Of a stretch of DNA of 64,000 nt, positions 3,494 through 58,300 are shown in pieces. The position numbers were made by a program, and so were the translations under genes. Numbering within the stretch: position 1 is the stretch's first letter; each line of letters opens with the position of its first letter. The notes beneath the pieces are model-generated. The model was not told the origin of the DNA. It saw only the letters and a program-made list of their open reading frames with translations, and ran no database searches. This stretch comes from Paragordius varius (lineage: Eukaryota > Animalia > Nematomorpha). Location of the stretch: contig OZ176055.1 in assembly GCA_964247055.1 (NCBI GenBank), forward strand, positions 3,224,001 through 3,288,000, read 5' to 3'.

Positions 3494-3583
3494 TTCAGGA
3501 CTTTTTAATCAGAACTGTTTAACGCAAAAAAGCACAGCGTGTTATATAGGACCGCATGTGTTATGCTAAATATATATTTTTAA

Positions 3584-4163
3584 CACTTGGATACAACACA
3601 CTCATTTTAGTCCTTCGATTCAAATTGGGGTAGTTGGATACCCCAGGCCTGTTGAAAATCAAATACTTTAAAAAGTATGGAAGGAATCGAAACCATGGCA
3701 AAATTTTGCACTTATATAACATTAATAAACCTAAATATATAAAAAATTTTATTCAAAAATACTTGATATTACACATTTTAAGCTAAAACTGAAAGGTATA
3801 TATTTCGTCAACGTGACATGTGACAAATTGTAAAATTGAAAAATTATACAAACTAAACCGCTTTTTCTATTTCTATCAATGTTAGATGTAATTTATATAA
3901 AAAAATAGCTTTAGTTTTAGCCTTAAATATAAATAAAGACGATATTTTGCAAAAAAATTTTAAAATAAAAATGGCGTCTAAGTAGTTTGAGATAGAGCTT
4001 TTTTTTCAAAACAAAATTTTATTTGGATATTTTGGTATATTTATATAATTTATTAGGATATAAGTATAAATTTAAATTAGGACCGTTTCCTTCAGTAGTT
4101 TTTTAAAAATATTGATTTAAATTAAGTCTGGGGTATTTAGATACCCCAATTTGAATCGAAGTG
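3584..4163 (+). mobile_element. piggyBac-like non-autonomous element (MITE family P), copy A
   Basis: Flanked by TTAA at 3580-3583 and 4164-4167. Ends CACTT...AAGTG. Subterminal inverted repeat TTCGATTCAAATTGGGGTA lies behind a ~25-bp spacer at the left end and is contiguous with the terminus at the right end. Confidence 0.85.
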
Positions 4164-4167
4164 TTAA

Positions 4168-4600
4168 CACTTGGATACAACACACTCATTTTAGTCCTTC
4201 CGTTCAAATTGGGGTAGTTGGATACCCCAGGCCTGTTCAAAATCAAATAGTTTAAAAAGTATGGAAGCAATCGAAACCATGGCAAAATTTTGCACTTATA
4301 TAACATTAATAAACCGAAATATATGAAAAATTTTATTCAAAAATACTTGATATTATTTATTTTGAGCTAAAACTGAAAGGTAAAAATTTAGTCAACGTGT
4401 CATTCAAATTGTAAAAAAAAATAATACAAAATAAACCGCTTTTTCTATTTTTATCAATGTTACATATAATTTATATAAAAAGGCTTTAGTTTTACCCTTA
4501 AAATTAAATGAAGACGATATTTTGCAAAATTTTTGTAAAATAAAAATGGCGTCGAAGTAGTTTAAGGTGGAACTTTTTTTCAAAACAATATTTTATGAAT
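4168..4600 (+). mobile_element. MITE family P, copy B (3'-truncated, shares TTAA with copy A)
   Basis: Starts CACTTGGATACAACACACTC immediately after TTAA 4164-4167; colinear with copy A to about 4600. Confidence 0.8.
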
Positions 4601-4764
4601 TCTTTTAAAAAACAAATTTGATTTAGTCTTGAAGACGAAGGGATCTCTTAATTTTGAGGTGATAGAAATGTTTAGCTCATTAGATTTTATTGAAAAGGTG
4701 ATTTTATAATGTTTTGCTTTTTTATAGCGTTTTCATAATGCATCAAAATAGAATGTACGCTTAA

Positions 4765-5333
4765 CACTTCGATTCAAATTGGGGTACCTAAATACCCCAG
4801 ACTAAATTTAAATTAAATTTTTCAAAAAACTACTAAAGGAAACGGTCCCAATTTAAATTTATGCTTCTGACCTGATAAATATTATATAAATATGCCAAAA
4901 TATCATGATAAAATTTTGTTTTGAAAAAAAAAGTTCCATCTCAAACTACTTCGACGCCATTTTTATTTTACGAAAATTTTGCAAAATATCGTCTTCATTT
5001 GAAGGGTAAAACTAAAGCTTATTTTTTATTAAAATTACATCTAACATTGATAGAAATAGAAAAAGCGGTTTATTTTGTATTATTTTTTTATTTTACAATT
5101 TGACACATGTCACGTTGACTAAATTTTTACCTTTCAGTTTTAGCTCAAAATAAGTAATATCAAGTATTTTTGAATAAAATTTTTTATATATTACGGTTTA
5201 TTAATGTTATATAAGTGCAAAATTTTGCCATGGTTTTGATTGCTTCCATACTTTTTAAAGTATTTGATTTTAAACAGGCCTGGGGTATCCAACTACCCCA
5301 ATTTGAATCGAAGGACTAAAATGAGTGTGTTGT
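4765..5333 (-). mobile_element. MITE family P, copy C (inverted)
   Basis: TTAA 4761-4764 followed by the reverse complement of the copy A right end; colinear to ...AAAATGAGTGTGTTG. Confidence 0.8.
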
Positions 5334-5518
5334 TAAACAAAATTCTTTAAAAAAAATAAATTTTCGAAAAAAAGTATGCATTTTTTAAAGATATATTTAG
5401 TTAATATAATAAAATTTTTATCGCGCAATCTCTGCATTTTTGCGTTTTATTTCAGAAACCTATGGGATTTCGGAGCCTTCATCAAGAATTTTTTTTAAAA
5501 AAAGTTCTGCTTTTTTAA

Positions 5519-6045
5519 CACTTAGATTTAAATTGGGGTATCTAAACCCAGGCTATATCGAGTTAGTATTTTTTAGCTATTATCCTAATAAAAATGAATA
5601 AATAAGCTATAATATCTAAAAATTTCGTTTTGAAAAAATAGTTACATGTCAAACTACTTCAACGCCATTTTTATTTTACAAAATTTTTATAAAATATCGT
5701 CTTCACTTAATTTTAAAGGTAAAATTATAGCTTATTTTTCGTTTATATTGTCTAACATTGATAGAAATAAAAAAGTGGTTTATTTTGCATTAATCATTAA
5801 TTTTGCCATTGCACACATATCACGTTGACTAAATTTTTACCTTTGGGTTTTAGCTTAAATAAGTAATATCAAGTATTTTTGAATAAAGTTTTTTATATAT
5901 TTCGGTTTATTAATGTTATATCAGAGCAAAATTTTGCCATGGTTTCGATTCCTTCCATATTTTTTAAACAATTTAATTTTAATCACGCCTGGGCTATACC
6001 TTAATTTGAATAGGCGGATTAAAATGAGTGTGTTGTATTCAAGTG
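5519..6045 (-). mobile_element. MITE family P, copy D (inverted, more diverged)
   Basis: TTAA 5515-5518 and 6046-6049; ends ...AAAATGAGTGTGTTGTATTCAAGTG. Confidence 0.75.
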
Positions 6046-6460
6046 TTAAAGGTAGTTTATAATAAATTTTAGTGATATTTTTTGGATGAAGCATTTAGAT
6101 TTCTCCAAAAATAATTTTTATTACAAAAAATGTGCTTAAATTTTGCCATTGATATGGAGCACTTATCACAAAAGTGAAAATAACTTTCTTAAAACACTTG
6201 TAAGCTCCAAAACCATCTTGTGATTCCTGATACATTTTTCTATCAGAATGTATTCATTTTACCAAGATATTTTTGGCCCCCAATTTCGTAGACATTGTGT
6301 ATTCCACAATGTCACAAAAAATATTATGATGACATGCTAGAAAATGTATCAGGATTATCATGTTATTTAGGTTTTGGACCTTATGATGTATTAAGAAGTA
6401 ATTTACACATTTGATGTAACTGCTTCACATTAGAATTGGCCAAATTTGGGCATATTTTAA

Positions 6461-6908
6461 CACTTAGATACAACACATTCATTTCCTTCGATCCAAATTG
6501 GGTAACTATTTATCACAGGCTTGTATGAAATCAAATATCTCAAAAATATGAATTTATCAATTTGCACTTATATAATATTCATGTCCCTAATTATAAACAA
6601 CAGATATTACTTATTTTTTAGACAAACCTGAAGGTAAAAACTTTGCCAAAATGACATGTGAAATTAATTTAATAAAAAATAATCCAAAATAAAGCATTTT
6701 TTCTCTTATAATGAATGATATTGGATCGATATTGATAAATTAATTAATTTTAGATTTGGATCAAATATACATATTTTCCAGAAATGTTGCAAAAAATATG
6801 GCAAAAAACTAGTTTAATAGAATTAAAAACTCAATTTTATTAAATTGGAGGATTTTTAGTTAGTTTTTAAGTAATATCATTTCAGTTACCCCAACTTGAA
6901 TCATATTG
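6461..6908 (+). mobile_element. MITE family P, copy E (degenerate)
   Basis: TTAA-CACTTAGATACAACACATTC start and ...TTACCCCAACTTGAATCATATTG end. Confidence 0.65.
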
Positions 6909-7629: not shown

Positions 7630-8750
7630 TAGATGTATTTTTCTGATAGGAAAGTATATCAGGATTATCATAATGGTTGTGGTATCAAAATGAACTGGTA
7701 CTAATACATACCAATATTTTTTCATCATTAGTTTAAATCACATTAGTTTTGGCCTTTATGGATAATAAAAATTATTCACACTTTTTTGTGGTAAAGCTCC
7801 ATATCAGAAAATGGCGTAACCAAAAAATATCATTAAAATATATAAACTACATATAAAATGTAATACAATATTTTTAAAAAAATTTACATACAAAATGTTG
7901 ACAAAGTCCCATATTTTTTCGCCCTTCTATTGGCTAGTTTTCTTTAAATAAACGCAAAGCTGCCGAGATTAGATAAAATTTTTTAATTTAATTTTGATAT
8001 CAAATAAAGGTATTTTTTAAATATGCATAGTTTAATTTAATTTTTAGCAAAATTTTCTTGAAGCGTATTTCATACTATTTTAAGGCATGTTTCGGAAATG
8101 GCATAAAAACGGTTAAGATATATTTAAAAACATTTTTATCATTCAATGATGCTAAACGTTTTTATCACCTCGACATTTTAATTTAAATGTTCTTGCTAAA
8201 TTTTGGTAAATATCGTAACAATTCAATTTATATAACATAATAAGGGACGAATATTTATCAAAATTTTGAGGTGATAATGTTCAGCATCATTGAATATATA
8301 AAAAAATTTATAATATTTTAAAGACCGTTTATGATATTTTCATCATGCCTCAAATTAATTTGAAGTAAGTTTTATAAAATATTCATTATTTCGGAAAAAA
8401 TTTTGTTGATGCCAACCAAAATTAAGCAATTTAAAAATTTTATCGCGCAATCTCGGCATTTTGGCGTATATCTTAGGGAACAATCAATTTTAGAAGGTCG
8501 AAAAATTGGAAACTGCCCATTCAAAAATTTCAAATTGTATAGAAATATAGTTTTGCCTTTTTATGAAGTTTATAATATATATTTTAGTGATATTCTTTGG
8601 AATAAAACATTTGAATTACACCAAAAAAATTGTTTAATAAAATATGCCCAAATTTTGCCATTTTCTGTTATGGACAAAAGTGCAATAATGTTTTATAATC
8701 ACTCTTATGGCCTAAAACCAAAAACACCATAATAATTCTGATATATTTTG
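7630..8750. repeat. ~1.1-kb (TA)n-flanked inverted-repeat element family; related copies at ~26100-26820 and ~32625-33625, fragments at ~5340-5510 and ~6050-6460
   Basis: End motif TGATAG(G)AAA(A)T(G/A)T(A)TCAGGATTATCAT recurs in both orientations; shared internal block (T)CGCGCAATCTC(T/G/A)GCATTTT at ~5420, ~8445 and ~33330; (TA)n tracts at 7603-7627 and 8757-8803. Boundaries approximate. Confidence 0.6.
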
Positions 8751-17730: not shown

Positions 17731-20700
17731 TTATATCAATGATTGTCTAGAAGTTACCAATAATTGGTATGGTGGGGGGAATCGAATAATTTCCATGTTA
17801 TCATCTTCAATATCAACTTGATTTGTATCAGAATCGCCGCATTTACTGGCATTCTTGTTAATGCCATTATCTAATTGGGGGCCAGAGTCCCCAAAAGTAA
17901 ACTTATATCGGTAAATCAAGTGAATTAAAATTATAAAAGTAGCTGGTTTTACAATAGGCATTCCAATACACGCTCTAGGTCCTACATAAAAATATTTAAA
18001 TAGACAATTTTCTATAATACAATTTCAACATAAATAATGATATTTAGTTAAAAAAAGTTTGTGGATATCGCAAAAGGTATGTATGTATAAAAAGTATAAA
18101 ACATATAAACAAGAATGCGTAACTTTAACCCTACCCCAATGCTTGTTAATTATACCATTTTTCAGTCAAAAGAAACACTTTTAACCCAACAAATGTTGCG
18201 CTTGCTTGGAATCGCGGTTTCTTGTAAAAATGTTGCGTTTTGATTAAATAAAATGGTGCTTTTGACTGAAAAATGATATATAATGTACATTTTCTAAAAC
18301 TTTTGGCGGTATTAATGTACCCCAAACTTAGTTCTAGTAATAAATATTTTATTAAACTATATTTGTCATTAATATCATAAACTATATCTTTTTGCCATCG
18401 AATCCAAAATGAAAGCGTCGTATCGAAACTTGGAATATAACTTGAAATTTACAGGTAACTCGTTAATCAGGGTTAATAATTTTGCTGTTTAGACTTTGGC
18501 ATTTATATATGTAAATTTAATTTATCTAAATATATGTTAGGACGGATGCACCATATGAAAATATGTTGTTAAAATCATATTTGAGACCTAAAAAATTTAT
18601 AACCAATAGTCGGTTATAATTTCTATAATATATAAAATATTGGGTTTATCTAATAATTTTTGTCCCATTATTATGGAAATTGTAAGCTTTATCCTTTTGA
18701 GGCCCAGTTGATTTGTAGCCAGTGTTTCAGACTTTTAGACTTAAAAAAACATTACAAAATATTTATTGCCCCTAAATCTTTTAATAGTTAGCCTTGTTTC
18801 TGCAACACAGGCCATTAACCTATAGTTTAAAGTTGGTAACTAGTCCGCCAAATTAATACAAATTAGCTACCAATGGAAAAGGGGAAAAAGCTTGATTTGT
18901 CGCAAACATTCATTGTAGAATTTAATTCATCTAAAATTATAAGAAATTATGATTTAAGTATTAATTTGAAATTATATTTTAAAATTAAAAATAAAATATA
19001 TGTAACTATCGGGCAATTATATTGAACCAAAAATATTATTATACATAAAGTGTGTAGATTTTTCGGTTTGCCCTAATTAATAAGATATTTATAATGTCAA
19101 ATAAGAGTTTGTGACAAAAAATATAAAACATTAATATTTTTTTCATAAGAGTTTTGAAGTGAACATTATAATAAACTAATATTAAAATGTTGTCAATAAA
19201 AGTAATCAAAACATATGATTTATTTTCGGTATTCAAGATTACGAAATAAATTTACACCTTTAAAAAGTTATAGCAAGATTTAATAAAAAATTAAATTATA
19301 GGGACAAAACTTAAAAATATAAAGGCGTATAATTGTTTAAAACACCATTAAACATGATTTTTTATCTAGGTCATTGTTTTTATTACACTTTGATTTTTTG
19401 GCTATATTTGAACTTATCAGTAACGTTAAGTTTTTTTAAATAATTCATATTTTATATTTTGGTGCATTAATGATTGTATAAGTGCAAACTTTTGGACTAG
19501 TTTATATTTACTCCATATTTTTTAAGTTATTTGATTAAACAGGTCTAATCTCACCAGAGTCCCCACTTTGAAATTTATTAAATTATCACCCGTGAAATCT
19601 TTTAACGTAATTAACAATCTAAAGCTTAGAAAATATTTATAATTCCATAAATTTACTTTTTAAAAATCGCTTTGGATTAAAGTGGAAAGGGTTTTTCCAA
19701 TATTTAGGGTCATGATGAATGGCATACATGTTTGGTAGAATGTATGATTCAGCAGGAATAGAATATTTATTTAAAAAATTTGGACATTCTTTGTGGTTTT
19801 GGTGAAATAATCCCATTGGCACAACGGATGCTACAGATAAAACAAATATATTAATAATTCCAAAAAATGATATTACAACGGCCAGAAATTTTTTTAGATT
19901 ATACCGAAATGGCTTTTACTAATTAAACTTTATCGAAACTTCATTGAACAATCTAGATCATTTAGCAAATTCAACAAATATTAATTTATAATTATAATAA
20001 TATTATTATTGGGTTAAAATTGCCTCATTTCCCTCTTCTTGATGTTTACCAAGTGCATAATCCTAACCGGCAAAAAGAAGACGTCAGTGAATTGAAATAG
20101 CCGATTATTTTATCACAGACGCCATTTAGTTCATCTGCTATTAAACGACAAATATAAACACGTTTCGTTGGCCAAACACCCCTGTCAAATTTTGTGTACA
20201 ACAGAAGAAAAAGGATTTTAAAAATCATGTTTTATTGTAGAAACATATGATAAACATCCATTTATTAAAGCACGTTAAAATTAGAATTTGTCGTATCAAT
20301 ATGAAAAAGAGTCGGCACTCTAGCACACTACACAACTGCGGAGATGATAAAGTGGAAGAATTATTATATGATGATTCCACTCAAACTAAACGGAAATTTG
20401 CAGGAGCATAGTATCACAAAAAACAATCAATAGAATTTTACGAGCAATGAAAAAGATTCATAATGGTAAATGGGTAACACATTCATTAAACGTCGAATTA
20501 AAAATTGCAGTGGCTTTTGACTTGTTGCTTCAAGGTCAAGTTAAATCGAAGGTAGAAAAAATTGCGGCTTTTATCATGGTAAGCCAGCTCATTAAGATCA
20601 AAGCCAAATACCGCGGCAAGAAATCCATAAACTTTTGGTGGGATCAGAGTAGTATTATTAGTGCCGTAGCTAGGAAGAGGGGGAAGGGGGGCTGATTGAC

Positions 20701-28913: not shown

Positions 28914-30770
28914 CTAAGTCGTAAACGACTTTTTGGATATAGTTTTAACTATTTCTTTCCATTTTTTTCTATCTTTAACCGCTATATTGAGCTCTTTCAG
29001 TGTCATTTTGGTCTCTTCTTTTATCATATCCAACCACCTCATCGGTGGTCGGCCTCGTTTCCTTTGCCCTTCTACCTTCCCAAACATTGTATCTTTCTCC
29101 AGAGAATTCGATCGCATGACATGACCAAAATATGTTAACTTTCTTTTTAGAATTATCTCCATGATGTTTGTTTTAGGTTTTATTTCGGTAGTTAGATTTT
29201 CATTCTTAATTTTATCCTTCCAGGTGTATCCTAGCATCCTACGCCAGCAACTCCTTTCAAAAGCCATGAGCCTTTCTTTGTCCTTTTTTCTGAGAGTCCA
29301 ACTCTCACATCCATATGTGGTGACCGGGAGAACGAAACAGTAGAGTAATCTTTTTTTGGTTTCAACTCCTACGCTTTTGTTTTTCCAAATCTTTATTAAT
29401 TTGGTCATCGCTTCTCTACCCAATCCTATTCTCTTTCTGATGTCAGGAGTTGAAGACCCATCCTCTGAAATTATTGCGCCCAAAAACGTTAACTGTTTAA
29501 CTATTTCTATTTCTACTCCTTCTATTATAATTGTAGGCTTTTTTCCTGTACATAATATTTTGGTTTTGTTAGGATTAAGCCTAAGATCATACCTCAAACT
29601 TTCCTTTCGAATCTCTTCAATCAATTCCTTCAAATCATTTGCACTTTCAGCTATAAGAGTGGTATCGTCTGCAAACCTTAAATTATTGATTGTTCTCCCT
29701 CCTATTCTTACTCCAATATTTTTACCATCCAACTTCCTCATTATCATTTCTGTGCACATATTGAACAGATAAGGGGATAAGCAACACCCTTGTCTGACTC
29801 CTTTCAAGATTGGTATTTCGTCTGTGTCCCCCGCTGGTGTTCTAATAATCGCTCTTTGTTTTACATACAGAGAGCTAATCAATCTTATTAAGTGAGACGA
29901 TACCCCTACTAACTTTAATGTTTCCCACAAGGAGTCATAGTTAATTGAATCGAATGCTTGTCTGTAATCAATAAAACACATGTATAATTCTTTCTGGAAC
30001 TCTTTTGATGTTTCCATTATCCTTCTCATGTTTGAGATATGGTCTCTTGTGCTTTTTCCCTTCATAAATCCGGCTTGATTTTCTGGTATTTCTGTCTGTA
30101 TGATACTGTGCATTCTGTTTTGTATTACTTTTAGTAAGACCTTACTAGCGTGGCTAATAAGAGATATGTTCCGATAATTCTCGCATTTGAGTACATCTCC
30201 TTTTTTATATATTGGGAGATATACAGATGATGCCCAATCGTTTGGCCACTCACATGTTTCCCACACCTTTTGACATAACTGGTGTAACTTTTCAACGGGA
30301 ATAGCTTTTATGAACTCTATTGGGATATTGTCTAATCCCATCGCTTTGTTGTTAGGAATTTGTTTTAAGGCTAATTCAACCTCCTCTCTTAATATATCTG
30401 GATCACGTTCTTCTTCTTTTAATTGCAACACCTTTGTTTGAGGAGCCTGATAGAGTTTTTGGGTGTATTCCTTCCATCTTTCTCGTACTTCTGTTTGTTT
30501 GCACAATATGGTGCCATTCTCTTTTTTAATCTTTTGTGATGATATAAAAGGTTTATGAGTCATTTGCTTCAGTTTCTGGAACATTGGTTGCATTAATCCT
30601 TTTTTGTTATTTAATTCCACTTCCAGACATTGTTTATTAAGAAAATCTTCGTAATCCTTCCTTGTTTGTCGTTGAAATTCTTTGTTATATAATTTTACCA
30701 TTTTATTATCACCTCTTGATTTAGCTTTTCTCCTCTTTTCTGCTATCTCTAACTCTTTTCTGATATCCAT
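28914..30770 (-). CDS. RTE LINE reverse transcriptase (C-terminal part of the split ORF)
   Basis: NYRNISLISHASKV, QAGFMKGKST, FIDYRQAFDS, GVRQGCCLSPYLF, LRFADD, RGRPPMRWLD motifs. Confidence 0.95.
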   Translation of the reverse strand: MDIRKELEIAEKRRKAKSRGDNKMVKLYNKEFQRQTRKDYEDFLNKQCLEVELNNKKGLMQPMFQKLKQMTHKPFISSQKIKKENGTILCKQTEVRERWKEYTQKLYQAPQTKVLQLKEEERDPDILREEVELALKQIPNNKAMGLDNIPIEFIKAIPVEKLHQLCQKVWETCEWPNDWASSVYLPIYKKGDVLKCENYRNISLISHASKVLLKVIQNRMHSIIQTEIPENQAGFMKGKSTRDHISNMRRIMETSKEFQKELYMCFIDYRQAFDSINYDSLWETLKLVGVSSHLIRLISSLYVKQRAIIRTPAGDTDEIPILKGVRQGCCLSPYLFNMCTEMIMRKLDGKNIGVRIGGRTINNLRFADDTTLIAESANDLKELIEEIRKESLRYDLRLNPNKTKILCTGKKPTIIIEGVEIEIVKQLTFLGAIISEDGSSTPDIRKRIGLGREAMTKLIKIWKNKSVGVETKKRLLYCFVLPVTTYGCESWTLRKKDKERLMAFERSCWRRMLGYTWKDKIKNENLTTEIKPKTNIMEIILKRKLTYFGHVMRSNSLEKDTMFGKVEGQRKRGRPPMRWLDMIKEETKMTLKELNIAVKDRKKWKEIVKTISKKSFTT

Positions 30771-31714
30771 TTGTTATCTTTCCTCTTTACTCTCTGCACT
30801 TTTTCTTTTGCCACTTCATTAACAACATTTTTTATCGTTCCCCATAATTGTTCTGAGCTACATTCGTTGTCCAAACTTTCTAAGCTATCTTTCGTTTCTG
30901 TTCTAAAACTATTTGGAATGTTCCGAGTGTCATATCTGTATATCTGTTTAACCTTATTTTTAATTATTTTAAGTTTGATTTTGGTTATTAGAAGCTCATG
31001 ATCGCTAGAGCAATCGCTGCTTTTGCTTGTTTTGGTATCGATTATAGAGCTTTTCCATTTTTGAGGACACATTATGTAATCAATTTGATTCTTATATTTA
31101 CCACATGGAGAGGTCCATGTGTATAACCTCCTATTGTGTTGTGGAAACCATGTGTTGGTTATCATCATCTCATTTTCTTGACAAAAATTGATCAGTGCCC
31201 CGGCCTCGTTTCGTTCTCCCAATCCATATGGCCCGACTATTTGATCTACTCTACCTCTACCAACTTTGCTGTTCCAATCCCCTCCTATGATAATCATATC
31301 TCCTTTCTTCGTTTCATCCAAAACTATTTGCAACGTTGCATAAAAGTCCTCTATGTCTTCTTTGGGAGCGTTTGACGTAGGAGCATAGACTACTATGTAT
31401 GTAAATTTAAGTGGCTTGGCATTCAGCCTAATACTCATGATTCTGGGTGTATATGGTGTATAACTAATGAGACTTTTATTTAATTTGTTTTTTATTAATA
31501 CTGCAACGCCTTCAGATTTCTGGTCATCTCTCCCCGATCTTAACAATGTATAATTTTCGTTTTGTACTTTCGCGCTACCTTTTTGCTTGGTTTCCGTTAG
31601 ACCCAGTATATCTATGTTCAATCTTTCCATTTCCTTTTCAATTATCACCTGTTTGGTTGATGTTAAGGAACGTACGTTCCAGCATCCAACTTTGAAAAGT
31701 CTTGTTAAGTTCAT
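30749..31714 (-). CDS. RTE LINE APE endonuclease (N-terminal part of the split ORF)
   Basis: VGCWNVRSL, DILGLTETK, VYAPT, GGDWNSKVG, NQIDYI, SDHELL motifs. Confidence 0.93.
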   Translation of the reverse strand: MNLTRLFKVGCWNVRSLTSTKQVIIEKEMERLNIDILGLTETKQKGSAKVQNENYTLLRSGRDDQKSEGVAVLIKNKLNKSLISYTPYTPRIMSIRLNAKPLKFTYIVVYAPTSNAPKEDIEDFYATLQIVLDETKKGDMIIIGGDWNSKVGRGRVDQIVGPYGLGERNEAGALINFCQENEMMITNTWFPQHNRRLYTWTSPCGKYKNQIDYIMCPQKWKSSIIDTKTSKSSDCSSDHELLITKIKLKIIKNKVKQIYRYDTRNIPNSFRTETKDSLESLDNECSSEQLWGTIKNVVNEVAKEKVQRVKRKDNKWISEKS

Positions 31715-33986
31715 ATAGTAAAACTATTTTTTGGCAGTAATAAACGAGGGTGGTTATTGCCTTCCCTCTCACTTACCCTCTTTACAAAAAAATAAATATC
31801 TAGAATAATTAAAATTAAAGAGTAATCTTTATAAATGTTGTTAATTTGGATAAATTATAAATATTCATATTTTACTCTGTCTGGCAATCATAAAGGAAAA
31901 ATATAAAGAAATTATGGCTAGGCTAGTAAAAATAAAATAATTAGGCACCAAGGAGTAGAGAAAAAAAAGAGAGATCTGTATAACAATGATTTTTGATGAC
32001 TTAAGAATTATGTTACTCTTTAAATTACATACTTAGCATACAAATAAAATAAAAACTCTACAAAACAAAGAAAGAGATTAATAATTACTAAAAGGAAACA
32101 TATTTTTTAAATATATTTATAGTATATAATAAAATAATACTATCCTTGAATATCTTGCCGCTTTCAATCACATGGTTTCATGCATGAGTTATATATAATT
32201 CCAACTTACAGAATCCTATATTACCTTAGCTCCAAATAATGACTAAAATCTATTTGTAGACATGCGCCTAAAAGGCTAAATGCATACTAAATTCGGCTCA
32301 ATATCTTTGAAAAGGTACTCAAATCGTTATGTGATACAACACTTCCATATAACTTAATAGTTTTAACATGAAATCAAACCATTTAAATTTTACTTTATTT
32401 TTTATGTTTAATATTTTGTTAAAAAACAGTTTTTCGCGCATATTTTGGATAAAATTTTTCCCCAATCGTACATATCAATATTATGTTTTTTAGGTCCCTA
32501 AAGGCTATATAATGCATTATCTAAATTAGCCCAGAATCATTGATAATAATTGTTACCATTCTGGTGTGGAATCCCTCAATGTTCACAATATCCTAGAGAA
32601 AGATGTATATATATATATATATATTGATAGGGAAATATATCATTATTATGGTATCTGGGTTTTGGCCCGTATAAGGGATTTAGAAGTTAATTCTACTTTT
32701 GTGATAACGGTTCCATATCATAAAATGGCATTACGTTTTATTAAATATATGTTTCTGGTGTAATCCAAATAGCAAATTATCAAAAATCACTAAAATTTAA
32801 AAACGTAAACAATATTATTTTAATTCAAGTTATAACTTTTATAGGCTTAACTTCAATTTTCAGCTCTCTTAAAATTGGCTGGTTCTATTGAATAAAGTCA
32901 AAATGATGGAATTGGATAATTTTAATATGCCAAATTTTGACATATAAAAATCTCCGAAAAATGGATATTGTGCTTAAAAATTATATAACACATTTTTGTT
33001 GAAGTGTACTTTACTATTTTGAGGCATTATGGAAACGGTGTAAACGCTTAAAATTTCAAAAACACTTTTCTATATAATTCTATAATGAAGTATTCGTTCG
33101 TCTTGACGTTATATATAAATTGTTTTTCCATAACCCGTGATAGAAATGTTCAGCATCGAATTGTATAAAAATGCTTTTTTTATAATATCTTAAAGCGTTT
33201 ATCATTTCCATCATGCTTTGATATAGTATGTAGTTTGCTTTAACAAAATTCTACTATAAATTAAATTTTTAAGCAAAAATCCATTGCATCATATAATGCT
33301 TTTTAAAAGTTAAAAGTACAATAAAAAATTTCGCGCAATCTCAGCATTTTTGCATTTTTATTTTTAAAGAAAAATCCCATTTTTTAAGGGCCAAAGATTT
33401 GGCACTTTCAGGCTATAAAATTAAAATTTTAAAAAGAATTGTTTTGTTTTTTTATCTTATAGTTACGGTGTTTTACAGTGATATTTTTTGGAAAAGTATT
33501 TAGCTATCACAATATAACCTAAAAGAAAATGCGCACAAATTGCTTATGGAGCATCTACCGAAACTTTAAATAACTCTCTTAAATTACTCGTAAGAGCTGA
33601 AACCAAGACCATGATATATTTAATTATCGGAATATACAATCCCGATTTTTAAGTAGAATTAGGGGTGCCAGTTGCTGTAATTTATATATTAGTTTTTAAA
33701 AGGTTTTAAAGATTTTTTTATTTTGAGTCCTGGATAGTATTATTTATTCTAATATTATTTTAATAAATTAGTTTTCAGATGAGCTTACTATTTGTAAAAT
33801 GTAGCAAACAAATTATATAATTTATTTAACATTGGATTGCAAGAGCTTCTATATTTGAAGTAACAGTATAGAGGCTACCTTTAATGTATTAAGAACTTAA
33901 CCATTTTAAGGCTACAGCTCTGGTAAAATTATATATAAAATAGTTTCTGTAGCCAGATTTACCAGTTGTTTTGTGTTACTGCGCAA

Positions 33987-36900: not shown

Positions 36901-39900
36901 GTAAAATCAAATTTTAGTTTAAATATACCATTTTCACTTCAAGAGTGTCTTGCAAAACTTAAGTTAATCTTTGGACATTTTAAGTTGGTCCTTTGACTTT
37001 TTCGTTTTGTTTTTAAGTTTTATCAAACAAATCTATCATTCATCGATATTATCGTTTTTAACCTATTTTCTATATTTAAAATCAATTGTTAATCAATATC
37101 AGCTTTTAATCATTCATAAACCGTATATCTTTATTCATTTCTTAAAATTATTTTCATTATTCATAAGATTTTAACACTTAATTTAAAAATATATAAGTTT
37201 TTGGGTTATTATTAACAATTTAACATTTAAAAGTTAATAATTTTAATAAATTGGGAAAAAATTAGTTTGAAACAAAAAAGTGGTTTTTAAATATATTTAT
37301 TTTTAAATAAATATATATATAATTAATAAAGACAGTTTGGTTAAAAAATAATAAAATAAAAAATAAATGCAAAAATTATGGTTAAATTTAAAAATTGACC
37401 AACTTGAAATACAAATGTTATATATATGCGCATACACCTTTTTTGTGATAATAAAATTCTGAAATTTGAATTTTGTTTGCAGGAATTGTAGTGTGGTGTG
37501 ATATTGATTTTATTTTTGTTTTTTTGACATAGAGAGATACCAAACTATATTATATCATAATTTTTTGTCATATAATATGACAAATTTATATATTTTTGCT
37601 TATAGAATTGTGGGCTCGTTAAAATTATTCATTATATTTGTGGTATTAAATTTTAATATTTTCATTTTTTATTAATTTTTATTTTAATGGGTTTATATTT
37701 TATATTTACCAAACTTTTAACTATTAAATTAAAGCAAAAATTATAATAATTACTATTTGATCTAAATATAGAAAGATTAATATTTTTATAAAAAGTATAA
37801 TCATATTCTATATCCTGATATATCTCATATTTACTCTCTATATATACAATTTGGATATTTAAATGTCTTACTTGTTATTTTTTTATTTTGAAACGCAACA
37901 CCCTTATAAATTATATTTACAAAGTTTAGGTTTATTTAATTGAGAATAAGTATGGTTGTCTTTATAAGCAACGCAAAAAAATACTTGTGTCTTCCAGTTT
38001 TTTACGTTTCTTTATATAATTTTAATTTTACTGTTAATCTATACCATTTACAGCTCAAATTGACCCTAAAATAAATTATGTTTTATCGTATATTAAAAAT
38101 TACATTATATAATTAGAAAGTTTGTTTGATATTAACATAATGCTGAAATAATAATGACTATGCCATAACGATATAATTTCTATAAATGATGAGAAAACAC
38201 CAAATATTTTAGGATAAATTTGAATCGTTCAAGATTTAATTAGGTGTAAGTAATATATACCATTTACAGTTCAAATTCACCCTTAAAAAGGTTAAAATCC
38301 CCTTGAACAAAAATTCACTCTAAAAATAAATTATGTGTTATCGGGCATAACTTATCATTAATATGAAATTTAATGGCATAGTTATTTATTTTTTTAGTAT
38401 TATTTTAATAAACAAAATTTTATTTTTTAATAATATAAAAATATAAGTAATTTTAAATATTAAAAAACTTTTAATTTATTTTAGGGTGAATTTGAATTGT
38501 TCATGGGTGAATTTGTTCGAGGTTGAATTTAAATTGTTTAAGGGTGAAATATATATATATATATATATATAGTAACCGCGGTGGGTAGGGCTCAGGCTTC
38601 AGCCGTTTTCCATGTTAATCAAGTCGCTAGTCATTATGGCGTTCCGGTTATAGCGGATGGCGGACTCAAGAATGTTGGTCATATTGTTAAAGCTTTAGCC
38701 ATTGGAGCCTCTAGCGGTATCAATTTTGTAAATTTGATGAAATAATTTTTTAAATATTTTTTTTCAAAAAAAAAATTTTTCAAGTCAATTATTATTGAAA
38801 TTATTATATATGGAATAATTCAGCAAAAATTATATAAATTTATTATAATATAATATTTCGATTACTACAAGTAATCTTTGTCAAACGTAAAAATAAAATT
38901 AAAATATAAACAAAAATTTAAATTTTAAAGTAAAAATATTTAATGAGATATGAAACTAAAAAAACATGTGTGTATTGTTAATAAGAAAAAAATTTGTAAT
39001 GTTATTAATATTGTTAAGGTCTTTCTTTCTGTTCATTATATTTCCTTCTTTGTTAATATAAAAACTTTCCTTCAATATTCTTTTTGTTCTGTTTTCCTCT
39101 GTATCGACAACTTCGGCATCCCAGTTTATTTTATGGTTACATTTAAAGGCATGATATGTTCCCAAATTCGAACGTTTTTTAGATTGAGAGTACTGTTTCT
39201 TAGTTCATTTACTCGGTATAATTTAATATTTTAATGTTACATATTTCTTTTTAATAATTCATGATTTTATAAAAATATTTTTCCAATTTTTTAGTTATGA
39301 TGGGATCTCTGCTGGCCGGGACCACCGAAGCTCCCGGGGAATATTTTTTTGCTGATAATATGCGCCTTAAAAAGTATCGAGGAATGGGAAGTATAGAAGT
39401 CATTTCAGGAGAATCTAAAAGTGGAGCAAATCGTTATTTAAGGTATATGCTGCATGGGTTTTCTAAAATATTAGAGATCACTTTTACAAAAGATTTTAAT
39501 TTATTGGGGGTTTAATTATATAATTTTCGAATTTTAAATAAAGATCTATAATGATTTTAATTATTATTCCCTGTACATGAAAATTTGGTGACAAAAAATG
39601 CCTTAAAAATATTTAAAATAAATTTTGGCATTATGCCTTTTTGCTTAAAATTTGCGTTTAAACAAAATTTTATATCACGGATTTTAGCAATAAAAAATAT
39701 CTTTCACACAAATTTTTTTGAATATGATTTATATAATTAATAAGAATATTTATTATGAATTTTTTTGAAATTTTTCCACAAAAAAAATTATTTTTATTTT
39801 TAGCGAAAATGATGCAGTGAAAGTGGCACAAGGCGTTAGTGGTGCTATTATGGACAAAGGTTCCGTCCACAAATTTATTCCATACCTCATCCTGGGCACG

Positions 39901-43355: not shown

Positions 43356-44350
43356 GTTTGTCAAAAATTTCACATAATAATTTTCACAAATGGAATTGAA
43401 CTCATGTCAAAACTATTCTTATATATTCCCATATATGCTAAAAGGTAACTGACTAATTTGTTACTTGGCAGGTAAGCACAAGCAAAGGTTCATGACAAAA
43501 GTATGTGACCTCTTTCTGTCTAAAAAAATTTAACGGACTTACTTCTTTTTTTTCTTAAATGTGAACTATTTTATTTCATCAGTCAACAGAGCGAGGCACA
43601 TATAAAATAATGAAAGAAAGGTCAATCATAAATCATTTTATGTGTGAAAATTATGTTTAATAACTGCTTCCTTTAAAGCGTTAAACGAGATTTGATTGAA
43701 ATAAATTTTTACATGATGTTAATTATATTAAGGTAGTAGGAGTAAAAACACATTCTTAAAAACCGATCCCATGCTCATTTGATATTGATATTTGGTTTAC
43801 AGCTTGAATTTAAGCTTTTATAGTTTGGGTTTTTGAGGTTGTAGGAAGTTTAAAAATGTGGGTAAAGGAGTAAAAATTTTAGTTATTTGAAAACTTATAA
43901 AAAGTTTTAACATTCCTATAGTCTAATGAGACTAAATTTAAACTTTATTATAATCAAAGGTCGGTCTTTCGCTATAACCCATTTTTGTAAATTACTCTAA
44001 TAAACTGGAAAAGACCATTTATTTCAATTTTTACAATCATAGGTTTTCTCTCTGCGCGAAAACTAAATGTGCCACTACCCCTTAAACAATAAAAATTTTA
44101 TACTTTTGATTTCAAAATAATTCTGAAAAAAGGGATCACTAAAATGATCCATATATGTGGATTATTTCGAAACATTATTTAATAACTATGATCTCATAGG
44201 ATTTTCTGAATGTTGCATTCATACTAATATATTGTTTATTAGTGTAAACCGCAAATTGACGGCTAACGGAAAAAACCCCTATACTATATTTTTTTATGCG
44301 TAATATATAAAGCCTTTATTGAATCGTATAGCTTCTTAAGTTGGAAATTA

Positions 44351-46026
44351 CAGTCATGTAGACTTTATATTGTTAAAGATTTACTTTTTTTCGTTAATTG
44401 GGTATTAATATTTGGTAAAGAATATAAAAACAAGAGCAATATGGTATTACCATATCATATTCTTTAAAAAAGTAAAAAATGAAGGGAAAGGGCGTCGGAA
44501 ATCTTTGGTAAAAAAATGAAAATACACTAACTACTAACCCTTCACTTAAATTTGATGGATATTTTGTAATGTTAAATTTTGAAAATATTATAGCAATTTA
44601 TTTTATGAAATATTGTTGTTACGTATTTAGATGCGGAATTTTGTGGGTTTTTATCTTTAATAATTTAATAATGGGTATTTTATTTATGATTAATAATTAA
44701 ATTCAATAATTACTATTTTTCAACATGATAAATACCTGTATTAATCGATATTGGTATTATTTTATATAGTTGTTATTAGTAATTAAAATACAGGTTATAT
44801 ATTTGTTGAAATTTAATGGATTGCTTTGTTTTTATGTTATTCATTGTCAATTTTTATGTATTGACATTTTAATCAGGAAAAAATTTCGGTTTTTAAATTT
44901 AGTCAAATTAAATTTTTTTGTTTTTTATTTAACATTGTTAATTGTAATTAATTACTATATATTTGTAAATTTTAAAAAATACAGGTAAAAATGGCGGTTT
45001 TTAACAAATTTCAAATTTAATTTTTTTTGTATCATTGTTATTTGTTATTAATTATCAAATATTTTCGACATTTAAAAAACATGTTAAAATTGCGGTTTTT
45101 TATAAAATTAATAAATTTTTAATGTTTTGTTCAACCTTGCAAATTATTCAAATAATAGTAATTTTTACCTGTATATATCAATGTATCAAAAATATATACA
45201 TAATAAATTAGCGAGGTTGAACAAAACATTAAAAATTTTATTAATTTATTAAAAACCGCAATTTTCACCTGTATTTATTAAAATGACCAAATAAATTAAT
45301 TACAATTAACAATGCAAATCCTAAAATACAAAAACTCAATTTTTATTAAATTTATTAAAAACTGCAATTTTTACCTGTAGTAATTATTAAAATGTCCACA
45401 ATATGTAATTCATTACAATTAACAATCTTAAATTAAAAACAAAAAAAATTAAATTTGACTAAATTTAAAAACCGCAATTACCTGATTAAAATGTCAATGC
45501 ATAAAAATTGACAATGAATAACATAAAAACGAAAACAATCCAAAATCTACTTAAATTTTAACAAATGTATAACCTGTATTTTAATTACTAATATCAACTA
45601 TATAAAATAATACCAATATCGATTAATACAGGTTATCATGTTGAAAAATAGTAATTATTGAATTTAATTATTAATCATAAATAATAAAATACCCATTTAC
45701 TATTTATTAAATTATTAAAGATAAAAACCCACAAAATTCCGCATCTAAATACGTAACAACAATATTTCAAATGTTAACATAAATTGCTATAATATTCTCA
45801 AAATTTAACATTACAAAATATTTATAATTTAAGTGAAGGGTTAGTAGTTAGTGTATTTTCATTTTTTACCAAAGATTTCCGACGCCCTTCCCCTTCATTT
45901 TTTACTTTTTGAAAGAATATGATATGGTAATACCATATTGCTCTTGTTTTTATATTCTTTACCAAATATTAATACCCAATTAACGAAAAAAAGTAAATCT
46001 TTAACAATATAAAGTCTACATGACTG
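44351..46026. mobile_element. Foldback-type palindromic element, TA TSD (Tc1/mariner-like ends)
   Basis: TA|CAGTCATGTAGACTTTATATTG ... CAATATAAAGTCTACATGACTG|TA. Arms ~44351-45140 and ~45213-46026 are near reverse complements, with internal AAAACCGCAATTTT(C/T)ACCTG-type subrepeats. Confidence 0.88.
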
Positions 46027-46049
46027 TATCTCCAAAGCTACGCCATTTT

Positions 46050-53100: not shown

Positions 53101-54705
53101 ATGATTGAGAATGACAAAAAAATCTAATCAAGAAATTGTTTCGAGTTAAAATATAGAAAATGTAAAGAGATAATATACCAATCGGTAAGATGGATATAAA
53201 GAGATTTGATTTCTTTTTATGTTGTTCACCAGAGGTGAAAGTGGTATAAACTAAACCATACCATTCTTCACTACAAGTGTCGTATAAAGAATTATTTTGG
53301 GTAAAATTTTCAGTCCTCTCACCATTCCTGTTCTGATGAGCTGTTTTAAGTTGATCCGATTCAAGAATTTGTATTCTAACAAGGGCACACATTCCTTCTA
53401 GCTTTAAACTTGCGTGTAATAGGACCAAAAAATTTGGGTTTGATTTACCTGTAAAAAGTCAAAACATAATTTTATAGTTTAAATTTTGATAAAATAAAAA
53501 ATAGAGTGGAATACGATACTACCAACAATGTATTTTTTTTAAATAAAAATTTATTATTTTGGGATCATGTAAATTTATATATCTAAGTGGTAAAATAAAA
53601 AGATAGCTTTTTGGTAAATTTTATTCGTTAAACATCTGCATTATAATAGAAATGGTTATTATTTGTGCGTAAATATATAGCAAATATGTCTAATTTTAAA
53701 TTATGATTGGTTTGATTGACCATTGATTTACTCAAAACAAACGCAAAAATAAAGGTCGTTTTTTTATTAATTTTTTGCTTTAAAATTACAAAAAAATGTT
53801 TATATTAAAATAAATATCAGTAAAAATTTATAGCATTTTCTATTTTATTACCAAAATAATGCCAAAATTTTTTCGTAAATTATTTTTTTCTAAAATAAGC
53901 ATACCTTTAGCGTTTGAAACAGTTTCAGTACTAAGAATGACATGTTTAGATAAAGAAGGGAAATTGAGACTTTCTACGTACGGAAAGAATCCATAAATAT
54001 CAAAAATAATTGATTTTATATTCGAAAATTTATTGTGCAGATTGTTATATTGTAAATATTGATAAGGACACATTGGGAATAAATTAACTTTTTCGCTTAT
54101 GGTACCGCATCTTAATAAATATATATAAGTACATATTTAATACTGTATAATAAATGTTAGCTTGTCAAATTTTGGGTTGATTTTAAATTTGTTGTGTTCA
54201 ATTACCATAGATTTGGTAGTTATGTTGGATTCGTCTAAAATTTATATTTGGTTTACCAATAATAACACATTCGCAAAATAAGGGAAATGGAAAATTATAA
54301 AGCATAATGTTTTGCATTTCATCACATCTCTCTTTATCAGTAAATAAAAGTAACTAAAATTCTGTAAAATTTTATAAACCTCAAAATGTGTATCTATTCC
54401 AAAATTTTCAACCGTCAATTGATTTACGTCATTTAATATGTCGCCAATTTTTTTCCGAATTGTTAGTTTTGATTCTTTAAGTTTTTTAATTAATGGATCA
54501 AACTCTGAAAACATAATAAAATCATCATTCATAAACTATAATTATTCGGTTAACATACCAATGATATTTCTTCATATTTATATGTTTCGTGAAAATTTTT
54601 CAAAAAAGTTACAATTTTTTCTTGCGCCTTTGTAGATAAAGAAACGTTATTGATATCTACGCGACCCATAGATAAATTATTATCATAAAATATTTGGGTC
54701 GGCAT
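50194..54705 (-). CDS. INTS14: Integrator complex subunit 14 (VWA9)-like (~656 aa, 11 exons)
   Basis: Exons 54705-54559, 54535-54380, 54353-54257, 54234-54144, 54110-53905, 53448-53179, 52481-52292, 51624-51241, 50807-50714, 50621-50447, 50354-50194; phase-consistent. MPTQIFYDNNLSMGR ~ MPTVVVMDVSLSMTR; LLLFTD; FPFP; PSLSKHVIL ~ PVLSRHLVL; PNFLVLLHASLKLEGM ~ PNFCVLLHGSLKVEGM; EWYGLVY..KKKSNL; YYKELNKFR ~ FYKELNRLR (human motifs recalled from memory). Confidence 0.9.
52916..53087. mobile_element. Small hairpin MITE in INTS14 intron 6
   Basis: TATGCATTTTAATGGCTGC..CACACTATAGT versus ACTATAGTGTAAGGTATGCAACCATTAAAATGCATA (imperfect ~35-bp inverted repeat). Confidence 0.6.
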
Positions 54706-55349
54706 GTGTTTTTAAATTTAACACTTGGATACAACACACTCATTTTAGTCCTTCGATTCAAATTGGGGTAGTTGGATACCCCAGGCCTGTTTAAAATCAA
54801 ATATGTTAAAAATTATGGAAGAAATCGATGGCAAAATTTTGCACTTAAATAACATTAATAAACCGAAATATATAAAATAAATTTTCAAAAATACTTGATA
54901 ATACTTATTTTAAGCTAAAATCGGAAGGTTAAAATTTTGCCAACGTGACATGTGTGAAATAGTAAAATTAAAAAAAACTACAAAATAAACCGCTTTTTTA
55001 TTTCTATCAATGTTAGATGTAATTTAAATAAAAAATTAGCTTTAATATTACCCTTAAAATTAAATGAGGACGATATTTTGCAAAAATTTTATAAAATAAA
55101 AATGGCGTCGAAGCAGTTTGAGATGGAACTTTTTTTTCAAAACGAAATTTTATTAAAATATTTTAGCCTATTTATATAATTTTTATTGGGATAGAAGCAT
55201 AAATTTAAATTAGGACCGTTTCCTTCAGTAGTTTTTTTTAAAATTTAAAATTCAATTTGGTCTGGGGTATTTAGATACCCCAAATTGAATCGAATTGTTA
55301 AATAACAACCAACTGATTTTATCCACGCTTGAAAAACTTCAAAATAAAT
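54706..55349. promoter_or_regulatory. Inferred bidirectional promoter INTS14 / PP2A-A
   Basis: Only 644 bp separate the divergent ATGs (54705 minus, 55350 plus). Contains a YY1-like AAAATGGCG near 55100 and TGGGGTA..TACCCCA palindromes at both element ends. Activity is inferred from gene geometry. Confidence 0.6.
54722..55297 (+). mobile_element. MITE family P, copy F, between the INTS14 and PP2A-A start codons
   Basis: TTAA at 54718-54721 and 55298-55301; colinear with copy A (3584-4163) over its whole length. Confidence 0.88.
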
Positions 55350-58300
55350 ATGCCTGAAGATTCTGAACCAAACTCTAACGTAACAACTCCAAACCCCAAT
55401 GCTAATAACACGATTCCAACTTCACAGCAGCAACAATCTCAGCAACAAACTCGAACTGATGAACTGTATCCAATTGCCGTTTTGATTGATGAGTTAAGGA
55501 ACGAGGATGTTCAAGTAAGCTATTTTTAATTATATTTTATAAAATATAAAAAGTTGTTTTTTCTGGAAATTTTTGCATAATAGATGTATATTTTTAATTT
55601 CCTAATTAAAAAATATATTCCACGCAATTTAGTGTTTCTTTATCGTTCGTAATGCATTTATCTTCTGATATTAATCTATGCCAAGCTGGCATTTCAACCC
55701 TAACATGTCAATTTTTGATATTTTTAACCAATAAATCTAGATCTTTATATCTGAACTAATAATGCACACCCATTTCTTATTATACATTATACAATTGAAA
55801 TGCCACATTTGCTCTTCGATAATAATCCAAAAACCGAAATTATGTCTTTGTTTTGCACAAAATATTTAACTTAACCTTTGAGCACCTTATAAGGAAACCA
55901 TTTTGGTTAACATAAAACCTCATATAATTACTTAAACATAGCTGCTATAGGGTAACTCGCTCAAATATTTATATGGTATAAAACCTCTGTTTCATTCTGT
56001 TTGATTGTTTGTTTTTAGATTGCGACGTAAAGATTTATAGGGCCGGATAGAAGTATTATACTTTAGAGATAAGATAAACACACAAAAAGTTTTGAATCAA
56101 GACCAAGTTTATTAAGCAAAAATTTAAATAATCGTCAATGCGCCTCCTAACCATAACCGGGTCTAATTCACTTGGTTTCGGATAGGAATTGGTGTCTATA
56201 TCACTCACCAAGAAATTTAAAGTTTTAAATTACCCCTTTTTAAGGACATACCGACAAGTATCGCATAACTGTTCATATGCACTTATACATTAAATAGGTT
56301 TATCAAATCAAAAAATCAAGCTCATAAAGAAGCACTTTATTGGCTGCAGTTTTATCACTGGTTTATCTATCCGATGTTATTAAATATTTATTGATAGTGT
56401 TGTTATTTCATTGATTAAATCAAGTTAAAAAGTAAAACAAAATATTTATATTAGACTTAAGGTTAAATGATATAACGGTGCGGACCGAATATTCTGAGTG
56501 TCATTTCTCTGCTATGATTTTGCACCATTTTTCAATGTTTGTGATATTAATTGGGTGTGAGAACGATAAACTAAATTTAATTTTAATTGTCAAATTATAC
56601 AAAGTCGTATGCATAAACCCTGGATTAATACATCTTATGTTGCATTGAAATACTTTTAAGCATATAACTTTTATGTTAAAATATTTCCAGTTTCAAAGGA
56701 GTAAATTTATAATTGGACATGTACGTACATTCAGAGAAAAGTACTTATTTTAATCGCAACAAAATTAATGTATAACCAAATTATATGATACTATTAAAAT
56801 CATCCAGCTTTTAAAATTATTTTCGCATTAATCATTTAGCGTTTAACCAAATTTTTATAGCATAAATTACCCAAACAACCAATTTATCTTATAATCAATC
56901 TATTTTAATATACCATTATAGTGTCGACTAAACAGTATACGGCGTTTGAGTACAATAGCGTTGGCCCTTGGGCCTGAACGAACCCGATCAGAACTTATTC
57001 CCTTCCTTACCGAAGCCATCTATGATGAAGATGAGGTATTACTTGCCTTGGCTGAACAATTGGGCCAATTTACACCCCTGGTTGGGGGTCCGGAATACGT
57101 GCATTGTCTTTTGGTAAATATACCATGTTTTTTTCGGATGGTTGCGAAATTCGTAAAAAAAGGAATTTTTAAATTTTGGTTTTATTAAATTTTTTTGATT
57201 ATTATACAAACGAGATTTACTAATATTAACTAAATGAAAATTGTAGTTTTTATAGTTTATTTAAATAGTGTATAATTTGAGATAACATAATATAATAATG
57301 ATATATTAGTTTATATATTGTTGGTATATACATGTTTTTTTGGTTTGTTAAAAATGGCTTTTAGACAATTTTTAGTTTATTTGCGATTTTTCTACCAACA
57401 AGATTTATTGGTGTTATATAATTGGGTAGTTTAATAATGAAATTTTTTAAATCAGGGTGTTCAACACTCTTTTTTCGGTACGCAAAATAGCTCTTAAAAA
57501 TGTTTAAAAAAATGGATTTTAATTGAAAATTTGCGATTATTTAGAATATCAATATTTTAAAATTGGGCACAAAATAGATAAAAATTAGGGCAGGTGCGTG
57601 GATTTTTGCGTTGGACACTCCTGTATTAGCTTATGTGGTATGAATAGTATTATAAACTGAGTGTATAACATATATATATATATGTTATGGTTTTGAGTTT
57701 TGCCTATATATGAATTTTTTAAATTTGATATATTGTTTGGTAAATATGGCCGTTTTTATATTCTATTGAAACTTCCATAATGATTTGGTTGAAAAAAATT
57801 GTATTTGAGATTTTATCGATATTAGCTGTAACTGAAAATTTATAATAAAATTACTCTAATTTTGGCCATATGCATCAAAACTAAAAATGCAAATTCCCAT
57901 AAAAAGTTCTAAAAACCGGTAAAACTTTCTCTCATATTTTCTTAAAAAATACCTAAACTTTTTTATAAAAGAAATTCCAAAAACGTAAAATAATTCACAT
58001 TTTTTAGTAATGAAATTCCAAAAACGTAAAATAATTCACTCTTTTTTATGTGTAGCCACCGCTTGAAGGCTTAGCCACCGTAGAGGAGACCGTAGTTAGA
58101 GATAAAGCGGTTGAATCGTTAAAAATGTTAGCGGACTTGCACAATACCCAAGCACTTGAAAGCCATTTCGTCCCACTCGTCAAACGATTATCGGTTGGGG
58201 AATGGTTTACTTCACGTACGTCGGGGTGTGGTTTATATGCATGTGCATATTCTCGTGTCTCATCAACCACCAAGGAAGACTTGAGACAGTATGTACTATG

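Follow-up and report, generated by a model that had tools for sequence, protein, structure and literature searches.

A TTAA-flanked MITE fills the spacer between the start codons of the divergent genes INTS14 and PP2A-A in Paragordius varius

A MITE flanked by TTAA fills almost all of the space that separates the start codons of INTS14 and PP2A-A, two divergent housekeeping genes, and the reading that we favor, on balance, is that an old, fixed and probably immobile TTAA element inserted into a compact 64-bp promoter that was shared by the two genes. We describe the anatomy of this locus, the membership of the element in a repeat family, the abundance and age of the copies, and a second copy that lies close to a promoter, as found in the window (the whole stretch of DNA that was analysed, 64 kb) and in sequencing contigs, and we infer the positions of the transcription start sites (TSSs).

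Results

Anatomy of the INTS14/PP2A-A spacer

Direct reading places the INTS14 start codon on the minus strand (CAT at 54703-54705, ATG at 54705) and that of PP2A-A on the plus strand (ATG at 55350), with 644 bp between them; by this distance, which was taken between ATGs and not between TSSs, the genes form a head-to-head pair (divergent, <1 kb apart). The body of the MITE (54722..55297, plus strand; 25% G+C) accounts for 576 bp of the 644 bp and is bounded by TTAA target-site duplications on the left (54718..54721; the flanks of other copies diverge at 54717/54718) and on the right (55298..55301). Outside these duplications, a 12-bp flank (54706-54717) adjoins the start codon of INTS14 and 48 bp separate the right TTAA from the PP2A-A ATG, such that the spacer without the MITE and one TTAA amounts to 64 bp between both ATGs. 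Together with its flank, the right TTAA reads TTAAATAA (55298-55305), a TATA-like sequence 52 bp before the PP2A-A ATG. The first-pass annotation had described an element of 576 bp in 644 bp, with flanks of 12 and 48 bp and 64 bp left over, that fills the spacer between the two start codons; every coordinate agreed on direct reading, and the description is borne out.

Exon 1 of INTS14 (54559..54705, minus strand; 49 codons, MPTQIFYDNNLSM...) is followed, directly after codon 49, by a micro-intron of 23 nt (54536-54558, minus strand; GTATGTTAACCGAATAATTATAG, GTATGT..TATAG), and at least one further tiny intron seemingly lies near 54353. On the other side, exon 1 of PP2A-A (PR65; 55350..55514, plus strand) comprises 55 codons and precedes intron 1 (55515-56921, plus strand; GTAAGC..TTATAG). 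The identity of INTS14 is supported by an exon match to the Pfam family IntS14_b-barrel (5.8e-11) and by the alignment of exon 1 with the first exon of Gordionus INTS14 (MPTQI...), and that of PP2A-A by a match of a downstream exon to PR65 scaffold subunit structures in the PDB (E=7e-31), with entry 7cun among the structures matched. The products of this divergent pair belong to a single machinery, INTS14 as subunit 14 of Integrator and the PP2A scaffold as a component that joins Integrator in INTAC.

The element is a TTAA-specific, piggyBac-like MITE

The element has the properties of a MITE: a length of 576 bp, no open reading frame longer than 47 codons, inverted-repeat arms of 61 nt (54752-54812 and 55234-55294), a TTAA duplication and many copies. 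Each arm contains a subterminal palindrome of the form TGGGGTA(N6)TACCCCA, namely TGGGGTAGTTGGATACCCCA at 54764..54783 in the left arm and TGGGGTATTTAGATACCCCA at 55263..55282 in the right arm. At the left end, the terminal CACTT is separated by a 28-nt spacer from the subterminal block CGATTCAAATTGGGGTA, and at the right end both blocks adjoin with no spacer. The termini of the target copy are CACTT...AATTG; alignment of the copies gave AAGTG as the right end of the family consensus, so the right terminus of the target copy carries a point mutation (AAGTG to AATTG).

The inverted repeats of piggyBac elements usually start with CCC/CCY...GGG. Of the features of this superfamily, we found the TTAA duplication at both ends and the combination of terminal and subterminal repeats with asymmetric spacers; the CCC/CCY...GGG termini were absent, and the family has CACTT...AAGTG. 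Since the termini are not CCC, we file the element as piggyBac-like, by target site and end architecture, and not as a proven member of the superfamily. With piggyBac-derived MITEs such as human MER85 and MER75 it shares the strict TTAA duplication, a non-coding body of ~0.6 kb, a high copy number, and terminal and subterminal inverted repeats that are unequally spaced at the two ends; it differs from them in its termini (CACTT...AAGTG here, CCC...GGG there). The earlier assignment to a TTAA-specific MITE of piggyBac style holds, given the asymmetric ends and the presence of TTAA at every intact end. Isolated ends outside the family matches, TTAACACTT at 37171 and AAGTGTTAA at 11486, may belong to other elements that were moved by the same transposase.

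An abundant and old repeat family

A profile search revealed six further copies or fragments in the 64-kb window, seven including the target, and TTAA adjoins every intact family end in the window; the element is a genuine repeat family and not a chance inverted repeat. Copy A (3584-4163, plus strand; profile match 3581-4166) lies between TTAAs at 3580-83 and 4164-67, and copy B (4168-4597, plus strand; profile match 4165-4597) follows it head to tail and shares the TTAA at 4164-67. Copy C (4765-5333, minus strand; profile match 4762-5333) has a TTAA at 4761-64, copy D (5519-6045, minus strand; profile match 5516-6048) has TTAAs at 5515-18 and 6046-49, and copy E (6461-6859, plus strand; profile match 6458-6859) has one at 6457-60. 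These five copies are thus packed into 3.3 kb (3580-6859), two of them in tandem, two inverted and several truncated. The remaining match, an old family fragment at 19412-19572, lies within an apparent P450 intron. Just upstream of the first exon of a P450 gene (27125-27718), two long minus-strand open frames of 324 and 619 codons (28917-31723) read like an endonuclease and a reverse transcriptase, as in an apparently intact non-LTR retrotransposon.

Contigs of the same species from two DNA runs were aligned to a 3,501-letter stretch (53600-57100). About 40,700 contigs matched, with a summed depth of 1.1-5.7 million on the MITE vs ~700 in the flanks, that is, 10^3-10^4 times the flank depth, and a pile-up of this size indicates thousands of family members. 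Against the other copies in the window, the target copy shows 85-90% identity, and the sites listed from the DNA contigs include at least 22 at which it departs from most of the family. Judged by its sequence, it is an old resident: the divergence of 10-15%, the differing sites (at least 22) and the mutated right terminus make it likely that this copy no longer excises, and the terminus AATTG is what probably stops excision.

Relatives, sequencing runs and the search for an empty site

An exhaustive protein search with an INTS14 exon returned a single relative, the INTS14 of Gordionus sp. m RMFG-2023, a horsehair worm. PP2A-A was not present within 10 kb upstream of Gordionus INTS14 (locus L001), indicating that the adjacency of the two genes is not common to Gordionus, and the MITE family was not detectable in 35 kb of that locus. 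No other nematomorph was found in a protein search with Gordionus INTS14, and a search with PP2A-A exon 1 returned only unrelated short proteins.

A single search of sequencing runs detected the locus only in the DNA-like runs X1, X2 and X3, and in no RNA run. The small, presumably RNA runs that carry the same species label (X4-X8) lacked the locus; they contain a PP2A-A exon fragment that is only ~88% identical to the window, which suggests that they come from another species, cryptic or mislabelled, and we took them as such. Cryptic or mislabelled species have been argued for Chordodes (bioRxiv 10.64898/2026.02.03.703548).

The joint expected of an empty site (54721 to 55302) was not present among the contig matches listed for the DNA runs. 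One contig of 346 nt (run X3, from organism B) matches the window over 54555-54721, beyond which it continues for 179 nt that are unlike anything in 53600-57100. We ruled it out as an empty site, as the bin depth shows no continuation into the right flank; it may reflect a rearrangement, a different insertion at this TTAA or a chimeric assembly.

Start-site predictions for INTS14

Toward INTS14, the MITE ends 12 bp from the ATG (16 bp with the TTAA), and since only this much remains, INTS14 transcripts must, by this geometry, begin in the left end of the MITE or cross it. An upstream ATG (uATG) lies within the MITE 38 nt before the INTS14 ATG (54741..54743, minus strand), and three more minus-strand uATGs lie deeper in the element, making four in all; there is no AG between -20 and the start codon. 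As the uATG at -38 is out of frame, productive INTS14 mRNAs must, on this reasoning, either start in the last ~37 nt or arise upstream and have the MITE spliced out. The uATGs, the one at -38 and the three beyond it, argue against a simple read-through 5' UTR and would push the INTS14 TSS into the terminus of the MITE. Initiation in or at the left terminus appears to us somewhat more likely than not. In a narrow sense, judged by position, the sequence preceding any nearby INTS14 TSS belongs to the element, so that the MITE does serve as promoter DNA.

A start at an old site in the right flank, across the MITE and with or without splicing, is a lesser but appreciable possibility. The candidate for this ancestral INTS14 TSS, at the level of a motif, is an initiator-like TCAGTT in the unique right flank that points toward INTS14 (55311..55316, minus strand). 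When the empty site is reconstructed, TCAGTT lies 29 nt before the INTS14 ATG, leaving a 29-nt 5' UTR, and a weak TATTTAT at about -36 overlaps the start codon of PP2A-A; TCAKTY is expected ~0.2 times by chance, and TATA- and Inr-like matches in these AT-rich 64 bp are individually not significant. By this reconstruction, the MITE would have landed at about +14 of the old INTS14 leader.

A core promoter outside the element at PP2A-A and at a zinc-finger gene

On the PP2A-A side, TTAAATAA at -52 is made of the duplicated TTAA and its flank; it lies outside the MITE body and existed before the insertion too. We think that PP2A-A probably retains its own core promoter in this right flank. An intron in the PP2A-A 5' UTR that ends in the flank was also considered and is excluded, since there is no AG in the 76 nt before the ATG.

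The same geometry is seen at a second gene in the window. A C2H2 zinc-finger gene starts on the minus strand at ATG 3493, and the left TTAA of copy A lies 86 bp upstream of it. Within the unique flank of this gene (3513..3548, minus strand), TATATAA (3548-3542) is located at -55 and CAGTT (3517-3513) at -24; the ~32 nt between them match the canonical distance from TATA to initiator. The flank has the look of a core promoter that stands on its own, apart from the MITE, and, going by these motifs, a promoter and a 5' UTR can fit in ~55 bp in the genome studied; so the MITE family would here adjoin promoters without supplying them. The first-pass annotation had reasoned that 64 bp are too little for two 5' UTRs plus a promoter, and that premise is weak, as the flank of the zinc-finger gene packs such motifs into ~55 bp outside the MITE. 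Pfam and PDB searches gave no support for the identity of the zinc-finger gene; the only match, at the level of a lead, was to U1/JAZ-type C2H2 clusters, and the gene may be ZNF830-like.

Motifs in the element and its placement near start codons

Two kinds of motif within the element had been put forward as promoter candidates. The 'YY1-like' motif AAAATGGCG (55099..55107, plus strand) occurs eight times in the window, five of them in family copies, which are all the copies that retain that part, and three in other, unrelated repeats; it is not promoter-specific. The occurrences outside the family are at 7808, 44988 and 46041, and the latter two fall within, or directly next to, a large element with arms that are 99% complementary (44349-44515 and 45862-46028). 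The TGGGGTA..TACCCCA palindromes turned out to be the subterminal inverted repeats of the transposon, found family-wide. A bacterial-type promoter scan, which is irrelevant here, gave matches below chance.

The window has three independent family loci, and at two of them the element is found less than 100 bp upstream of an ATG, its left end toward the gene. When the target, which was chosen for its proximity, is set aside, one of two loci falls in ~1% of the sequence (p about 0.02). This proximity to ATGs is suggestive, and it is equally predicted by an insertion preference.

Discussion

According to the reading we favor, the MITE inserted in the AT-rich centre TTTAAATTTAAATAA of a 64-bp bidirectional promoter, the insertion was tolerated, and the element then decayed in place. 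Its position would reflect a landing preference for open, active promoter DNA together with what selection tolerates, and not a built-in promoter function. Because the TTAA was duplicated on insertion, the PP2A-A side would have kept TTAAATAA and 44 further bp of the original upstream DNA, and PP2A-A would still probably start in the right flank, its 5' UTR being ~20-25 nt long. Only 12 bp were kept on the side of INTS14, and for that reason INTS14 would now initiate in the outermost few tens of bases at the left end of the MITE or, by an alternative route, at the old right-flank site, with the MITE carried in the 5' UTR or spliced out. TE insertions at essential housekeeping genes are usually selected against.

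TE-derived promoters and TE insertions in 5' UTRs are well documented in plants and animals. The present case resembles them in that element DNA directly precedes the transcribed 5' end of a host gene or forms part of it, and differs in that it involves essential housekeeping genes and is known from sequence alone. A landing bias of this kind has been measured: piggyBac favors highly expressed genes and DNase-hypersensitive sites (PMC5333637). Such a preference would explain why a TTAA element came to lie in the open promoter of constitutive genes; the measurements, however, were made in mouse cells with the insect piggyBac (PMC5333637), and the transposase here would be that of a nematomorph. 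A parallel in arrangement is the mimp element of Fusarium oxysporum, which is always found in the promoters of SIX effector genes, including the head-to-head pair SIX3-SIX5, and the deletion of which left expression unchanged (PMC8101498). In both cases a MITE lies consistently upstream of genes, including one shared bidirectional region; mimp, however, is a fungal element of Tc1/mariner type (impala) at effector genes, whereas the genes here are housekeeping genes, and its dispensability was demonstrated by deletion, whereas our MITE is read from the DNA (PMC8101498).

The first-pass annotation had instead proposed a domesticated, portable bidirectional promoter cassette, with both TSSs and core promoters inside the MITE and with motifs borne by the family, and we regard this as unlikely. 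The extent of the element (576 of 644 bp, with only 12 bp left at INTS14) fits such a cassette, as do the two of three window loci whose left end faces a gene at <100 bp from its ATG; but this enrichment comes down to one independent locus (p about 0.02) and an insertion preference predicts the same. The final 226 nt of the MITE together with the flank contain no plus-strand ATG ahead of the PP2A-A start, which also fits a cassette, but this lack of ATGs belongs to the family consensus and not to the target copy. The candidate motifs are common to other repeats, the other promoter-proximal copy has its canonical TATA/Inr pair in the gene's own flank, and the family numbers thousands of copies, five of which are piled on each other in the window; mimp shows, moreover, that association with promoters need not mean function (PMC8101498). 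The further step, that both genes re-set their start sites inside the MITE and that the family carries a divergent-initiation sequence, as a mobile promoter module spreading in a horsehair-worm genome in which gene pairs already have spacers close to zero, is in our estimate improbable.

A different explanation concerns INTS14 alone and holds that the gene starts at the ancestral TCAGTT (55316-55311), with the MITE being part of the 5' UTR and removed as a new intron. For this hypothetical intron we picked by inspection a donor in the right palindrome (G|GTATCT at 55278) and an acceptor in the left terminus (CCAAG| at 54724); removal of the 555 nt between them would eliminate each of the four minus-strand uATGs, and the 54-nt leader that remained would be clean, and the Inr-like motif lies at a plausible 29 nt from the INTS14 ATG in the reconstructed empty site. 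The splice signals argue otherwise, as the available acceptors are AAG or GAG with poor pyrimidine tracts and the donor has no G at +5, while without splicing the leader would be 609 nt long, with the inverted repeats pairing to close it (-112.8 kcal/mol, z -1.9); we consider this explanation doubtful. It is very improbable that the insertion is unfixed, or a peculiarity of the assembly or haplotype, with the empty 64-bp site being the functional allele. The match of the X3 contig stops at 54721, precisely where the left TTAA ends, as such an allele would, but by bin depth it lacks the right flank and is hence not an empty site; besides, the copy is 10-15% diverged with a mutated terminus, as for an old resident, and both genes are intact.

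That MITEs insert in promoters or 5' UTRs is well known, and what is special here is the closeness to the ATG of an essential gene, and the phylum. If the MITE carries the start sites, this would be a clean replacement of a promoter by a transposon at two essential genes in the barely studied Nematomorpha, and, if true, it would fit the 5'-end architecture of this genome, with its near-zero spacers and introns of 22-35 nt beside shared promoters. What the locus chiefly documents at present is that a TTAA MITE family of thousands of copies targets promoter-proximal DNA or is retained there, and that an essential gene can tolerate a 580-bp insertion 12 bp from its start codon for a long time.
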